Shown here: positions 1 to 5,905 of the stretch, piece by piece
How the letters are laid out: each line of letters opens with the position of its first letter
Position numbering within the stretch: position 1 is the stretch's first letter
NCBI GenBank assembly: GCA_010909165.1
Contig: VJWM01000445.1
Span: forward strand, 1 to 5,905
DNA from: Anthoceros angustus
Taxonomy: Eukaryota; Plantae; Anthocerotophyta
Length of the DNA stretch: 5,905 nt
Direction of reading: 5' to 3'
Notes under the pieces: model-generated
Seen by the model: the letters and a program-made list of their open reading frames with translations, nothing else
Databases searched by the model: none
What the model was told of the DNA's origin: nothing
Position numbers and translations under genes: made by a program

Positions 1-640
1 GGCCTTGCTTGCCTCGGTCAGCTTCTTTCCCACCACAGCTCAGCCGCTTCACGATTTTACGTGCAATAGCATCCGGACTGATTTCTCGATCAAGGCTGCT
101 TTCACCTCGGCTGACTTTCCTAACATTGGGGCGAGGTTCGTGGTGGTCTTTATCGCCTTCTCCGTCTCGATCAAGGCCCAAACCCGCTGCCTCCTCTGTA
201 GGTTTAGCCGCCTCCTGACAGCAGCCGGTTTGAATTGAATTAGACATCCAAGCGAGTTGCATGAGTGCTCGGATCTTTAGCCTCACAACAATGGTGACAG
301 CTTCCTTGGGAACGGGTAAGCCCGCACATTCTCCCTTTGTATTCACACTTTCCAGCTTCCGATTCACGAGCCTGCTTTTCTGTCCGGCCGGGATCGATTT
401 TCAGAGGGTTGGGAATTGCTGCGGGAGGAGGCGGGCTCAACAGCCTTTGCAGCAGCCAGCGGCTTTGCCCGGTTTTCCATCAGATTTATCTCCAGCTCCA
501 GGCTTGGCTCCGGCCTTGGGTGAGTCTGGTTTTGTGACTTCCGGTCTTGGCATGAGTTTGGATGCTTTTGCTTTACTCCACCCTTCCCTTGGGCTGTGCC
601 CTTTGGATCCTTCCCACTTTGTTTCTCTGCGGTCTCTTAA
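1..640 (-). pseudogene. Exon block K: low-complexity linker and helical region, truncated by the window edge
   Basis: EVTKPDSPKAGAKPGAGDKSDGKPGK...NLAPMLGKSAEVKAALIEKSVRML resembles recalled NSLPDDLWDDEETKAELHQRVNDL. Multiple shifts and stops. A possible extra ~72-nt GTGAGG..CAG intron lies near 287-216. Confidence 0.5.
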
Positions 641-734
641 CTACGATGAATGACTCGTGAGCAAGAATGAATTAGCAAACCTTTGAATGAAAGTGGGCGA
701 GCTCCAAACCTTCTCCCCTCATTATCGCGTTTAC

Positions 735-830
735 TGGTGCTTGTTCCACATATTGCAGCCGAGTATGCAGCATGGAAAGGACCAGTTCATTGGCACATCC
801 ATTACCCAAAGTCTAGCCAAACATGGCATG
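735..830 (-). pseudogene. Exon J: MPCLARLWVMD / ANELVLSMLHTRLQYVEQAP
   Basis: Post-LID helices. The upstream intron would be only 49 nt (879-831), with an alternative acceptor at 813. Followed by a 94-nt GTAAAC...CATCGTAG intron (734-641). Confidence 0.45.
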
Positions 831-879
831 CTGGAAATGAGGTATATAGGCACCATGGGGGTGGATAGGAGGGCCTCAC

Positions 880-1034
880 GTTTTATCATCTTTAGGCGGG
901 GATCAAACAAGAGGTGATATTGACGGCCTGTCTTTGGGTCCACGCATTTTCCCAATGCACGTTTGATGGCATCTTCTTACGGTGATGTACAGTGAACAAA
1001 GCAATCCATCCAACCAGAAACCACCTTCTCCAGG
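880..1034 (-). pseudogene. Exon I: adenylate kinase LID-like segment
   Basis: SGWMDCFVHCTSP*EDAIKRALGKCVDPKTGRQYHLLFDP/PPKDDK matches the GRRxDPxTGxxYHLxFxPP LID pattern. TAA at 979-977. Donor GTGAGG at 879. Confidence 0.75.
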
Positions 1035-1122
1035 CTGCAAAGCGAAAGCAAGCCATCTTAGTTGGCTCCTATCCTTGAAAGCACCCAACAAAATAGGAGA
1101 GAACATCACCGGGGTGACTTAC
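1035..1122 (-). other. Spliceosomal intron, 88 nt
   Basis: GTAAGT...CTAAG...TTCGCTTTGCAG. Phase 2 joins LLF|LEKVVSG in frame with the LID motif. Confidence 0.85.
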
Positions 1123-1484
1123 AACAGGAGGTGGGGAGCAATGGTGGATGCGTTTGCGCTGCGAATGAGAGATCCGTCCGTAAGGTGCTTCTCCAAAAGG
1201 TCTGCTTGAGCACAAGTTGCTGGAAAAACCGTCCAGAATGAATCCCTTCTCTGCTTTTGAGTCACTGGACCTTTCTTTTGTCCCTTTTAGAGGTGATTGA
1301 GACGTTGTTGGCTTAGAGCCAGGAGGAGTTCCTCCTTTTAGCCTTCGCTGGCTTCGGTGGAGGTTTGGCTCCTCCTTTGCCTTTCTGTTTAGGAGATTCA
1401 CTGAACCTTTGGCGCTGCTTTTGGAAAGCATTGCTGAACCACTGTGACAGATTTCCCACTAGTCAAAATTTTGCTAATAGTCCC
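1123..1484 (-). pseudogene. Exon H: K/P/G-rich insert followed by GFILDGFPATCAQADLLEKHLT
   Basis: Two +1 shifts (T4 1336-1339 and A5 1224-1228) join KQKGKGGAKPPPKPAKAK, GGTPPGSKP...KAEKGFILDGF and PATCAQADLLEKHLT. Ends at donor TT|GTAAGT. Confidence 0.75.
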
Positions 1485-1595
1485 CTACAACGGTGAACAG
1501 TTGAATGAATCGAGCAGCGGCATTCTATTACCGTATTCGTCGAGGGATGTGAATGTGAGAACCAACAATTTAATCACAATGTGGTTACTGTGTAC

Positions 1596-1923
1596 CTCCA
1601 CCTCTATCAATACTAGGATGTATAGGTAATGTGTCCACACGTACATATTGAATATTTGCTTTATACCGCTTTCCACCATCCAATTCATTTTGGGCAACTA
1701 GACCTAGTCGCGCCATCGGAATAACGTAAAGTTCCAATTGAGATATTGCAGTTGCGGATGTTGCATCTTGGATCTTGTTTCGTTCCAAGGGCATCGGATC
1801 TTGTACCTTATTCCTTTCTAGGTTATGAACCTATTAAATTTCAATGGTTATGAGACCAAACTCGTTTGCTAACTTTTGGGTCAAGGTTGTTTTCCTTAAA
1901 CAACCCAAACAACACAAGCTTTT
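1596..1923 (-). pseudogene. Exon G: degenerate P-loop and start of adenylate-kinase-like domain
   Basis: KACVVWVV*GK/TTLTQKLANEFGLITIEI**...ARLGLVAQNELDGGK. The donor is uncertain: GTACGT at 1644 or GTACAC at 1595. Acceptor TTGTAG at 1485. Confidence 0.6.
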
Positions 1924-1999
1924 CTAGTAAGACAAACTAAGTAGGTTTTGATTAACAAGTACTTGCAAACAAATGTTGTAATCATAAGGATTTATTCAT
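1924..1999 (-). other. Intron (76 nt) with apparently mutated donor (GT to AT)
   Basis: GA|ATGAAT...TCTTACTAG|. Removing it yields ELPNLLEKACVV, which aligns without gaps to recalled ELPSFAVKGCLL. Confidence 0.55.
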
Positions 2000-2161
2000 T
2001 CTAAAAGATTAGGCAGCTCAGATGGTGCTGGTATATTGGGAACATGAGCAGGATCGTGTATACAACCTAGAATTAAATCTAGATGTATATTTTTCCGATA
2101 TTTAATCCCTCCCATTCTTCCTTTTCATTAATGTATTCCAAAACAAACGCAAATCAATCAT
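2000..2161 (-). pseudogene. Exon F: EYINEKEEWEG / DLILG...PAPSELPNLLE
   Basis: Resembles recalled SPEF2 EYKNMVGEW...NCILG...PELPSF. One -1 shift at T5 2090-2094. Confidence 0.6.
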
Positions 2162-2245
2162 CTAGAATGAGAAATCTTTTCATAAATGTTAAACATGTAC
2201 GTTATGTTGCAATTCTACATCTTTCCACAAGTCAAGTTACTATAC

Positions 2246-2425
2246 CTCATCGACAATCACCTCCACTTGTGTGACTTCCTCCGTAGATGCAGAGTCAAAG
2301 ATTGTAAAGGATTGGGTAGGACTGCTTCAAGAATAAAATTTTCCAATCATTCCATTTTGTATTTGGCATCACATTGTATTAGTGCTTTCCTTATAGGTCA
2401 TAGCATTTTCGGATAAACTTAAGAT
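2246..2425 (-). pseudogene. Exon E: ILSLSENAMTYKESTN / VMPNTKWNDWKILFLK
   Basis: Resembles recalled SPEF2 IVDLSTKVADYRMLTNNLIPYKLMHDWKELFF, with internal frameshifts. The 3' boundary GAG|GTATAG is tentative (84-nt intron at 2245-2162). Confidence 0.65.
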
Positions 2426-2538
2426 CTGCAAAAAAAAAACACTAAATTCATATGTGGTTTTGTATTACATTTATGGAGGTCTTGTGCTATGGATAGAACA
2501 AATCAAGGCTATATTTTCTTAAAAGTTGGAGTTGGTAC
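2426..2538 (-). other. Spliceosomal intron, 113 nt
   Basis: GTACCA...T10-GCAG|. The plus-strand A10 run at 2430-2439 is its polypyrimidine tract. Confidence 0.7.
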
Positions 2539-2607
2539 TTGCAATTAGCTCAAAACAATATCTCCTTCCATCCGCAAGTTCTTGTTCCATTTTCAATTTT
2601 TTTCTTC
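2539..2607 (-). pseudogene. Exon D: GRKKLKMEQELADGRRYCFELIA
   Basis: In phase with exon C. CFELIA aligns with recalled SPEF2 CAEILD just before IVDLS. Confidence 0.5.
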
Positions 2608-2800
2608 CCGAAAGCAATAATGCACATATATGATATGTTTGGCATGTAATCCAATAACCAAAAGAACAATTCACCGTAAACTACATCACAATCTAAATGC
2701 ATTATAGGCTCATAGTCAATATCAAATCACAAGAACAAAGTAACCACAACTTGAATAATTTTATGATAAAAATAGATTATTTTAAATTTAAAATAAATAC
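2608..2800 (-). other. Intron (193 nt) with apparently mutated acceptor (AG to GG)
   Basis: GTATTT...TTATTGCTTTCGG|. Splicing here keeps the frame: TKR-G-RKKLKMEQELADGRRYCFELIA. Confidence 0.5.
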
Positions 2801-3099
2801 CTCTCTTAGTTTACATTCTTTTGAGTTTCTGCCAATAATCCTCCCGTAACATCATCAACATTTCATGATCTCTAGCTAACACTAAATCCCATTCTTTATC
2901 ACGTTGTTACGCTATTTGCACTAATAAGATCCTATGTGCAATCCAAGAAAGCTCTTCCTCCTTCTCCATCCGTTCCGCTTCTTGTCTTCGAAGTGCTTCA
3001 TCACTAAAGTTCCGCTGAAAATCCTCTTTCTGAGCTTCTTTTTGGGCTTTTTCTTCCTCTATTGTTGATTGTTGTTGCAGTACTCTTTTCTGTAATGAT
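2801..3099 (-). pseudogene. Exon C: SPEF2 coiled-coil region
   Basis: RVLQQQSTIEEEKAQKEAQKEDFQRNFSDEALRRQEAERMEKEEELSWIAHRILLVQIA*QRDKEWDLVLARDHEMLMMLREDYWQKLKRM*TKR. TAA stops at 2909 and 2813. Ends at donor AGAG|GTATTT. Confidence 0.75.
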
Positions 3100-3199
3100 C
3101 TATTGTACGTTAGCTACGTACCATTAGTCTAAACTTGAGATCCATAAGTAGTAGGTACATGGTTTTTTGAATTATAACTTAATTATGAAGATATTTTAC
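3100..3199 (-). other. Spliceosomal intron, 100 nt
   Basis: GTAAAA...GCTAAC (branch-like)...AATAG. Confidence 0.75.
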
Positions 3200-3308
3200 C
3201 TTTCTTTTCATGATATCTGCTTGAAATCTTTTGCTCTTCTTTGGCTTTCCTCCTTTTGATGTCATCCAGCCTTTCCATCCTTTATCCGAGCCGCCTTTCA
3301 ATAAATAG
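3200..3308 (-). pseudogene. Exon B: coiled coil LFIERRLG*RMERLDDIKRRKAKEEQKISSRYHEKK
   Basis: 109 nt between AG and GT sites, with one TAA at 3284-3282. Charged helical composition. Confidence 0.7.
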
Positions 3309-3442
3309 CTATAATCAGATGAACTACAAATAATATACACCGATTCTTTTTATTCCTAGTAAGTCAACAATCTATCTTATTATTAGTCCATGGTTTTTAT
3401 CATTGTGCACATTGCTAACAATAAATTTATAGGTAAGCTCAC
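3309..3442 (-). other. Spliceosomal intron, 134 nt
   Basis: GTGAGC...CTGATTATAG. Removing it joins RLAQ|LFIERRLG in phase 0. Confidence 0.75.
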
Positions 3443-4254
3443 TTGTGCAAGACGAACGGGGTCTAATGGTAGGCTTTCATCCTCTTGCCCTTTCTTCTGT
3501 TTGGTATCTGCCTTTTTCCCCGCTTCTTTTCCTTTTTTCTCAGGTGTTGAAGCTTTCTCCTTTTTACCAGGTGACTTAATATCCCTTTTCTTCCCGTCGG
3601 GAGGAGTATCAACTCCTAGCTCATAACCTTTGTTTTCAAACTCATCAAAGTCCTTAATTGCTTGTTGTATGAGTTCTTTTTGTTGTCTCATTTGTTGCAT
3701 AGTATTCTGTTTTAATGAAATTGAAGTTGATGAGGATATGTAAGTCTTCATGGTACACTATTCAATTTTCTCTATTCTAAATATTTTGGTGATTGTTTTG
3801 AATAATGGACCTTGTGTGTAATGGAAACCTCCATGGAATAATCCAATTGTTGCATCTCGTGCCAATTACCCTAAACCAAATTCATGTCAAGATTTAAATG
3901 TAAGTATTCAAGAATATATATTTAAGGCTACCTCAAACATAAACCCCATTCTAGGTGTTAAGAATTGATCATTAAATGTTTTTTATTATCCTAATATTGA
4001 AAGTTTTGTGAAAATTACTCTAAGGCTTATGAATTGCAATTGCATATTGTTCTTCCAGCCTACTTTGAAGATATCCTTTGTTGAAAGGCCTGCAGAAAAT
4101 ATTTGAAATCAAAATTAATATCATTGATTATCTCTATGACTTTCAATCTATGCTCATCTTGAAATATTTTTCAAACATTTTCCTCAAAAATTTGGTTTAT
4201 CTTTTGTTCTTTTCTTTGAGGAAAAGAGATACATTTTATATTATATATAATCAT
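3443..4254 (-). pseudogene. Exon block A: CH-domain-like N-terminus plus K-rich linker (contains track ORF 3383-3751)
   Basis: One frame from ~4050 to 3443 reads FISLRVIFTKLSILG**KTFNDQFLTPRMGFMFEVALNIYS*ILTFKS*HEFGLG*LARD...QQKELIQQAIKDFDEFENKG...DPVRLAQ. Stops are at 3988, 3985, 3910, 3889, 3868 and 3760. An upstream frame (IFQDEHRLKVIEIINDINFDFKYFLQAFQQRISSK) joins via a frameshift near 4030-4060. The block ends at donor CAA|GTGAGC. A hidden intron inside it cannot be excluded. Confidence 0.6.
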
Positions 4255-4511
4255 CTGAATAATGAACATCAAAATCATGATTGACCAAATTTACCCATTA
4301 AGATGATCTTGTTACATGTACTAAAATTAACATAATAGGACAGGTGATAAAGAACAACACATCTTGAAATGACTATTATTTATATAGCTCATTATTTCCT
4401 CTTTTATAAAAATAAATCCCCATATAAATTGGTGAAGTCCATGTTTCCTTTACTTTCATCTAGTAACCTCCATCAATCTTGTTTAGTAATGACATGATTT
4501 GGGTCTCAATC

Positions 4512-5036
4512 AAACTTGGTAGCATGAACAATAAGCATCTAGCCAAGAAGCACAATAAGCTCATCAACATTCTATGTGATACAGTAGCTCCATAATAATC
4601 TTCCTCCTCAAACTCAAAGAGTTTGGATGATATAGGTGCTAATAACAGTGATTCATATTTCAAATCTCTTCACTACAATAAATTCACAATCGTGATGGAA
4701 ATGTTAATATATTGCACACATAATGTATCTATTGAATTTGCTCGCAATCTCCAATACATTCTTGGTATAATCATACTTCTTGAAACTTGGTAGTATGAAC
4801 AATAAGCATCTAGCCACAAAAAGCACAATAAGCGCTTATTGTTGTTCTATGTGATACACAAGTTCCTATAATAAACACCTCCTCCTCAAACTCAAAGAGT
4901 TTGCATGATATAGTAATCTTCTTCACTGTAATGATTTATTTTCAAATCTCTTTACTACAATAAATAAATTCACAATCATGATGGAAATGTTAATATATTG
5001 CTCACATAATATTATCTATTGAATATTGCTCACAAT
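4512..5036. repeat. Imperfect tandem duplication, period ~271 bp (copies 4512-4748 and 4783-5036)
   Basis: Shared blocks in both copies: aaacttggtag(c/t)atgaacaataagcatctagcca, cctcctcaaactcaaagagtttg, ttcaaatctctt, aaattcacaatc(g/a)tgatggaaatgttaatatattgc. Confidence 0.9.
4825..4842. repeat. Perfect 18-bp palindrome acaataagcgcttattgt
   Basis: The sequence equals its own reverse complement. It is present only in the second repeat copy. Confidence 0.9.
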
Positions 5037-5299
5037 AATCTGTCAAGTGGTATTGATCAATCTTCGGTGATAATAAAGTTCTTGCAAAATTCTTCTAAAA
5101 ATGAAGTTCAAAATAACATGTTTTTTATTAAAATTTATTCTTAAATTAAATATTTGAATATGTACTATGCATATATAATTATGATACCTAGGTCTCCTAT
5201 AATGAGTTAGCAAAGTTAATCCATTTGTTACAAATAGGGAGCTGTCGATCGATACTACAAAGGTGGTGCTAACTATTTGAGATGCCTCGTTCTTCAAAA

Positions 5300-5905
5300 C
5301 TCACTTTTCATGTCTCTCCACTTTCTTGCCATCTCTACTCCTATGGTACCTATTTGTCGTCGAGATGTAATGCAATTTCTCTTATCTTTGGCTCAATTTG
5401 CATCTAGACACTGGTATGTTGGTGTCACAATTTGGAGATAAAGGTAGATCTGGGGGTCAGTGCGTGGAGAGAGCATCATCGGCCCAAAGGCGATGGCACG
5501 AGGTCATGGCGAATCCTCGGAAGGTGAGGCTGATTCCCTCCCCGTGTGCTAATGTTTTGGGCTGCCAAAGAATTGGGCAGGAATGGAGCTTTAATTGGCG
5601 AGCATCACGCACATTGTGTGTGGATCGAACAAGTCGTGAGCTAAGTGGTACTTGTTCAAATTCCGGAAAAGTGCAACAAAGAAAGATTTCTCAAGCGCCA
5701 TTCTAGGCGGAAAAAATCTCCCCAGACTCGTTGTAGATGAGGCAGCAAAGCGATGACAATTTTGGTAGCCTAAACATGGAGGTGATGGAGAAGTTGCTGC
5801 TTTTCGAGGTGATCTTGCTCGATCAAGGTACTATGAAGAAGAAGGCATGCAACAAAGAAGGGAACTCTGATTATCCCCTTGGTGAGAGATTGCTTTGCTT
5901 CAAAT
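5300..5905. other. GC-richer, coding-like segment of unknown identity and orientation (decayed exon or TE fragment)
   Basis: GC and CpG rise relative to 3600-5300. Protein-like text appears in the plus frame from 5448 (NWAGMEL*LASITHIV...KWYLFKFRK) and in its exact antisense frame (MALEKSFFVALFRNLNKYHLAHDLFDP). I recognise no motif. Confidence 0.25.

Follow-up and report, generated by a model that had tools for sequence, protein, structure and literature searches.

The 5,905-nucleotide contig VJWM01000445.1 of the hornwort Anthoceros angustus (GenBank assembly GCA_010909165.1), analysed here over its whole length and hereafter referred to as the window, carries on its minus strand what solid homology identifies as the 5' (front) half of a plant SPEF2/CPC1 gene copy, the product of which is the C1b central-pair protein of 9+2 flagella. 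From position 4089 down to base 1 the copy is collinear with the 14 exons of an intact CPC1/SPEF2 gene, and its reading frame is broken as assembled. We consider it probable that the locus is a genuine unprocessed pseudogene, common to the source of the window and to the organism behind a public DNA run (X1), and that its lesion count has been inflated by assembly errors: at least one break looks real, and many may be such errors. The window copy would thus represent the 5' half of an intron-bearing SPEF2/CPC1 pseudogene that is unable to make protein because of a premature stop in exon 5 and because several exons are out of frame or devoid of splice sites. True inactivation of the gene and the existence of a working counterpart are both inferred; the copy would be without function and most likely accompanied by a working one elsewhere in the genome.

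An intact guide gene and the identity of the window copy

The guide for this comparison was reached through the exon 3 piece of the window (3757-3386), the sole match of which in an exhaustive protein search was P0001 (E 1.8e-18, 61% identity), encoded on the 23-kb Logan contig SRR33208241_3575, whose first 11 kb were taken as L001. Fourteen exons were defined at 178-5415 of L001, each with AG and GT at its borders, and a local script joined them into a stop-free frame of 1147 codons, while database searches were made exon by exon. In Pfam the exons match SPEF2_D5 (E 2.8e-7, with 30.9 bits exceeding the cut-off of 27, and a second part at 1.3e-4) as well as ADK and ADK_lid, and exon 7 yields a weak alignment to residues 477-519 of CPC1 as its only match in the PDB. 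The open frame across GT-AG exons and the three Pfam families therefore identify L001, by sequence, as a related plant’s intact CPC1/SPEF2 gene. Further same-strand open reading frames (ORFs) at 5416-11051 of L001 (e.g., 6472-7259 and 9300-10156) are probably later exons of the same gene.

When stop-free pieces of L001 were run against the window by tblastn, they gave same-strand, ordered matches from 4091 to ~80, with E-values of 4e-8 for exon 1, 1e-10 for exon 2, 3e-22 for exon 3, 1.5e-26 (the best) for exon 5 and 7e-15 for exon 13, and of 8e-8, 1.6e-8 and others for the remaining pieces. In frameshift-aware protein-to-DNA alignment all 14 exon peptides could be placed on the window with scores well above those of shuffled-peptide controls, and the coding signal of the window is confined to the minus strand. 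The exons are 55-78% identical between the two at the DNA level, and those of L001 that carry SPEF2_D5 align to the window at 68-74% identity; the window’s own exon 7 piece matches the same family only weakly (E 0.14, profile positions 115-132).

The kinase part of the protein is likewise readable. A stop-free piece at 976-734 (minus strand) containing AIKRALGKCVDPKTGRQYHLLFDP matches residues 835-858 of Chlamydomonas CPC1 (PDB 7n6g chain 6A, E 1.2e-3) and also adenylate kinase 8 (AK8), and the motif GFILDGF / FPATCAQADLLEKHLT can be read at ~1250-1180, where a shift divides it between two frames. Both elements of an adenylate-kinase-like domain, the GF.LDGFP motif and a lid of the form ..DP.TGR.YH..F.P, are accordingly present in the window. 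The gene leaves the window at base 1, and its C-terminal half, with the EF-hand region and the rest of the protein, lies outside. The original prediction, which named SPEF2/CPC1 from collinear peptide blocks and proposed a tblastn check, thus holds for both the family and the collinearity, with the number of exons corrected from its ~11 to 14.

Pfam and PDB searches with the window pieces alone were mostly blank because the pieces are short, and a Tau repeat match of piece 2-400 was rejected as a low-complexity coincidence. Word-index protein searches with the exon 3 piece of the window and with the products of two L001 exons returned only the queries or nothing, full-length plant proteins being outside their reach; exact look-ups found no database record for two window ORFs, and no relative emerged from a metagenome scan with exon 5 of L001.

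Frame breaks and splice sites along the assembled exons

Across the 14 exons the frameshift-aware alignment makes 34 frame moves, 11 of which survive a strict rule that demands at least six residues at 50% identity or more on each flank. Frameshifts within exons, as originally described, are thus present in the assembled sequence, part of them probably as assembly errors, whereas the "more than ten stops" of the same description shrink to three firm stops on the homologous path (TAA 2909-2907, TAA 1836-1834 and TAG 1833-1831) and a weak one (403-401), the remainder lying within introns or in frames reached after a shift. Besides single bases, DNA alignment with L001 reveals multi-base indels of -5, +4, -4, -2 and -13. 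Splice sites have been lost at the acceptors of exons 6, 8 and 14 and at the donor of exon 10, and the exon 13 acceptor is displaced by 3 nt; most others are kept. Indeed, 12 of the 13 intron positions are common to the window and L001, mostly with AG/GT preserved, which bears out the view of an unprocessed relic with retained introns. Exons 2, 3, 6 and 11 are clean.

At the 5' end, the exon 1 remnant (4019-4089, minus strand, as are all exons) reads AFQ.KGYLQSRLEEQYAIAIH..LR with its AG and GT kept and two frameshifts as assembled, and is followed by the 60-nt exon 2 (3811-3870; GNWHEMQQLDYSMEVSITHK) with both splice sites kept and by exon 3 (3443-3706), which at 264 nt has the same length as in L001. 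The exon 4 remnant (3200-3279) is 80 nt long where L001 has 87, and its frame is shifted by the deletion of 5 nt and the insertion of one. Exon 5 (2801-3089), the first part of the CPC1/SPEF2 D5 domain, carries the in-frame TAA at 2909-2907 within the conserved block IA*QRDKEWDLVLARDHE (asterisk, stop) and a +1 shift at ~2822. Exon 6 (2539-2608) is open, the AG of the L001 acceptor being GG in the window, and exon 7 (2246-2425), in which the D5 domain ends (...WNDWKILFLK...), accumulates four frameshifting indels (+4, -2, -4 and -1).

The main part of exon 8 (1999-2135) has its acceptor AG changed to AA and a 1-nt deletion in an A run at ~2093, and the stretch that combines the tail of exon 8 with exons 9 and 10 (1666-1924), corresponding to the adenylate-kinase P-loop region, contains the adjacent TAA TAG at 1836-1831 and an exon 10 donor altered from GT to TA; relative to L001, ~140 nt are absent from the exon 9/10 region. 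Exon 11 (1532-1595; ..IVIKLLVLTFTSLDEYG) is open, exon 12 (1123-1445), with the kinase motif GFILDGFPATCAQADLLEKHLT, shows five frameshifts as assembled, and exon 13 (880-1037), which encodes the kinase lid, remains 84% identical to L001 despite four indels of 1-2 nt. Finally, the start of exon 14 (1-776) uses all three frames with up to 12 shifts and has lost its acceptor in a 9-nt deletion; its counterpart in L001 is a single open frame of 1381 nt.

The one discordant intron position has features of its own. At the site of L001 intron 8, between ..GPPYSG and RSTV.., the window reads straight through (1894-1924), and ~75 extra bases stand 36 nt upstream of the missing intron (1925-1998), enclosing a GT...AG pair at a distance of only 41 nt. 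The difference could stem from loss of the intron combined with an insertion, from intron sliding or from a jump in the assembly.

Genuine decay versus consensus error

Whether these breaks reside in the genome or in its assembly can be approached through X1, the only public DNA run found to hold the locus, the contigs of which were placed on the window only at 90% likeness or more, so that a diverged working copy would escape. One X1 contig (record 5) covers 2547-3028 and shows just two substitutions, at 2676 and 2989, and the letters of the exon 5 stop are unchanged in it as far as the output goes; the TAA therefore appears to be present in the X1 sample as well, no substitution being listed there and the six gap letters of the contig having no located position. 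X1 furthermore has a private defect, the deletion of 1 nt at 3677 within exon 3, an exon that is clean in the window. Among the 11 codons that differ between the two by visible substitutions, 10 changes are nonsynonymous and one is synonymous, a ratio without sign of purifying selection, although the sample is small and the changes on the window side could be errors. At four residues the window agrees with the distant L001 and X1 is derived: L in exon 1, H in exon 2 (GNWHEM), L in exon 3 and R in exon 5 (ALRRQE) are replaced by F, Y, I and Q, respectively. Window errors cannot explain these four changes, which suggest that the X1 copy is free of constraint. The pattern is reversed in exon 12, with X1 equal to L001 at A and E and the window differing.

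The lesions themselves also extend beyond simple one-base slips, as they include the exon 5 TAA, the TAA/TAG pair at 1836-1831, multi-base indels, and the acceptors or donors lost at exons 6, 8, 10 and 14. Confinement of the errors to homopolymers was considered and rejected, as only ~7 of the 34 shift sites fall in runs of four or more and the majority lie outside them.

Several observations nonetheless weigh against genuine decay. Even exons with four frameshifts retain 74-87% protein identity to L001, exon composition carries no trace of GC-to-AT decay, and a second intact copy did not turn up in any search. Only 0.21 of the window’s 31-mers are present in X1, which looks more technical than natural, and between the X1 contigs and the window there are 58 substitution and 63 indel places, near-equal counts that again look more like technical error than natural divergence. 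At least three window breaks are repaired by X1 contigs: a 394-nt contig over 1196-1573 has one A fewer at 1224 and so reads GFILDGFPATCAQADL in one frame, the same contig mends the ~1422 shift in exon 12 and reads TTAQS as in L001, and a loose end at 1582 makes the start of exon 11 encode VPD, again as in L001. The six unplaced gap letters also leave some room for an indel at the exon 5 TAA in X1.

These same observations underlie the alternative that the window holds the organism’s working, single-copy SPEF2/CPC1 and that every break stems from consensus errors in a small long-read contig that was poorly polished. We regard it as possible but rather unlikely. It would account for the indel-rich differences from X1 and the low fraction of common 31-mers, for the three restored readings, and for "broken" exons that stay highly identical to the L001 protein, share the composition of an intact relative and retain most of their splice sites; moreover, the indel rate against X1, ~1.6%, would be sufficient for the 34 frameshifts. 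It is at odds with the seemingly unchanged exon 5 TAA, and with an X1 copy that itself combines the exon 3 frameshift with radical changes of conserved residues (H to Y, R to Q and L to F) that would not be expected of a gene under constraint. Multi-base indels, adjacent exon 9 stops, ~140 missing nucleotides and lost splice sites are, moreover, atypical of homopolymer errors. We therefore retain the genuine pseudogene as the more probable interpretation and propose that part of its frame breaks are probably nanopore-type consensus errors, in which case true decay would be milder and younger than it appears. The relaxed selection postulated in the original prediction gains some independent support from the apparent presence of the exon 5 stop in the X1 contig, the private X1 defects and the 10 nonsynonymous changes out of 11; the heavy decay that accompanied it was overstated, as X1 restores several frames.

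Base composition was also considered as a record of decay. Differences between the window and L001 are balanced (284 GC-to-AT, 308 AT-to-GC), the observed/expected ratio of CpG is higher in the window exons (0.62) than in those of L001 (0.36), and the AT-richness was rejected as a product of deamination because L001 follows the same trend. G+C climbs along the gene from ~30-36% in its 5' part to 45-50% in its 3' part in the window (1800-5200 against 1-1500) and L001 (1-5000) alike; the same rise in an intact gene indicates that the shift is native to it and reflects neither decay nor a chimera. A methylation-context test was set aside: CG/CHG sites are over-represented, in either direction, among the differences that separate the window from X1, which fits methylated DNA and does not distinguish mutation from miscall.

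X1 itself appears heterogeneous at two places, with A5 and A4 versions at 1224 (window 1160-1235) and both a window-like and an L001-like exon 11 start at 1583-1604, and near-identical contigs have a depth of 5-9 where others reach ~20. The two versions and the contrast in depth hint that X1 contains two copies or two genotypes. A sperm gene is expected to be silent in vegetative tissue, and X2, presumably an RNA run from the same sample, is uninformative for such a gene, nothing from it having been placed on the window.

Upstream region, evolutionary origin and known systems

Upstream of exon 1, window positions 4255-5905 contain nothing recognisable of SPEF2/CPC1, no other gene on either strand and no Rfam family. 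Stop-free minus-strand pieces of 4063-5905 have no Pfam or PDB match to the N-terminal calponin-homology (CH) domain (DUF1042/CH_2), and L001 begins too late in the gene to guide the comparison here; the domain may be situated outside the window or have decayed past recognition. A ~280-nt AT-rich unit is present at 4500-5075 in two diverged tandem copies, noncoding as far as tested and ~86% alike with ~9 indels between them. An X1 contig links 4937 back to 4655, and that sample may accordingly have a different or larger number of repeats. Over the 5,905 bases G+C is ~50% at 1-1500 and 5250-5905 and ~30% between; the distal segment, 5250-5905, with 47-50% G+C, has ORFs on both strands (e.g., plus-strand 5398-5706, 102 residues) that match no family.

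A short, AT-rich piece of only 5.9 kb with tandem repeats is what would be expected of fragmented, repeat-rich chromosomes, and it has been reported that the sex and accessory chromosomes of hornworts are highly repetitive and fragmented in assemblies (PMC12409103). Both features would suit a pseudogene stranded on a sex-limited or accessory chromosome, such as a U chromosome, on which a sperm gene is useless and whose partner chromosome keeps an intact copy. We nevertheless deem this origin improbable: the AT-richness is native to the gene, with the same trend in L001. SPEF2 was not found among the terms of the gametolog text in that article’s main text, tables aside.

Another proposal, that the window holds the lineage’s only SPEF2/CPC1 copy and that this copy is truly dying, with the central-pair protein being lost while other flagellar genes are retained, is one to which we attach little probability. 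In its favour, X1 presents one version over most of the locus, carrying the stop, a frameshift and unconstrained replacements, and searches of every kind were silent on a second copy. That silence is weakened by the 90% placement threshold, under which a diverged working copy is invisible, and by protein searches blind to full-length plant proteins, while the two X1 versions at 1224 and 1583-1604 and the intact gene retained in a related plant speak against a sole copy. It is correspondingly doubtful that a sole SPEF2/CPC1 has been truly inactivated by a premature stop common to two independent samples, and that a land plant whose sperm swim is losing the C1b protein. A wholesale loss of flagella is unlikely because L001 shows the gene retained in a relative, and the window is not proof of it; an ordinary dead duplicate, or a partial artefact, is more likely.

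Were the inactivation real and the copy the only one, the locus would offer a rare snapshot of one central-pair gene dying while flagellate sperm are still made and would raise the question of whether C1b is dispensable in that plant. If the copy is instead a dead duplicate or partly an artefact, the window has practical value as a warning against taking frame breaks in this assembly at face value, and claims of gene loss need accurate reads.

Among known systems, L001 has the exon-intron structure of the window for 13 of 14 exons, at 43-87% protein identity per exon; unlike the window, it has GT-AG introns throughout and a frame that stays open over its 1147 codons. The landmark order is also that of Chlamydomonas reinhardtii CPC1, a 1929-residue protein of the C1b projection of the central apparatus (PDB 7n6g/7sqc chain 6A): its D5 segment at 477-519, to which L001 exon 7 aligns, corresponds through that exon to exon 7 of the window, its P-loop near 590-610 corresponds to the region of the exon 8 tail and exons 9 and 10, and its lid motif ALKRALGRRLDPQTGRVYHLEFDP at 835-858 matches AIKRALGKCVDPKTGRQYHLLFDP. 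Similarity to CPC1 is low beyond the kinase motifs and D5, and, unlike CPC1, the window copy is interrupted by stops and frameshifts, extends over roughly the first half of the protein only and has no CH domain that could be found. Mammalian SPEF2 (sperm flagellar protein 2) belongs to the same family by virtue of Pfam PF22946 ("CPC1/SPEF2 domain D5") and the adenylate-kinase domain; no mammalian SPEF2 chain was among the matches of the solved-structure searches, and the likeness is known here through the Pfam family. As in unprocessed pseudogenes in general, the window copy combines retained introns with frame breaks, stops and lost splice sites. Flagellar genes have been lost in the non-flagellate seed plants, where the whole apparatus disappeared; unlike that loss, the window would record the decay of one copy.

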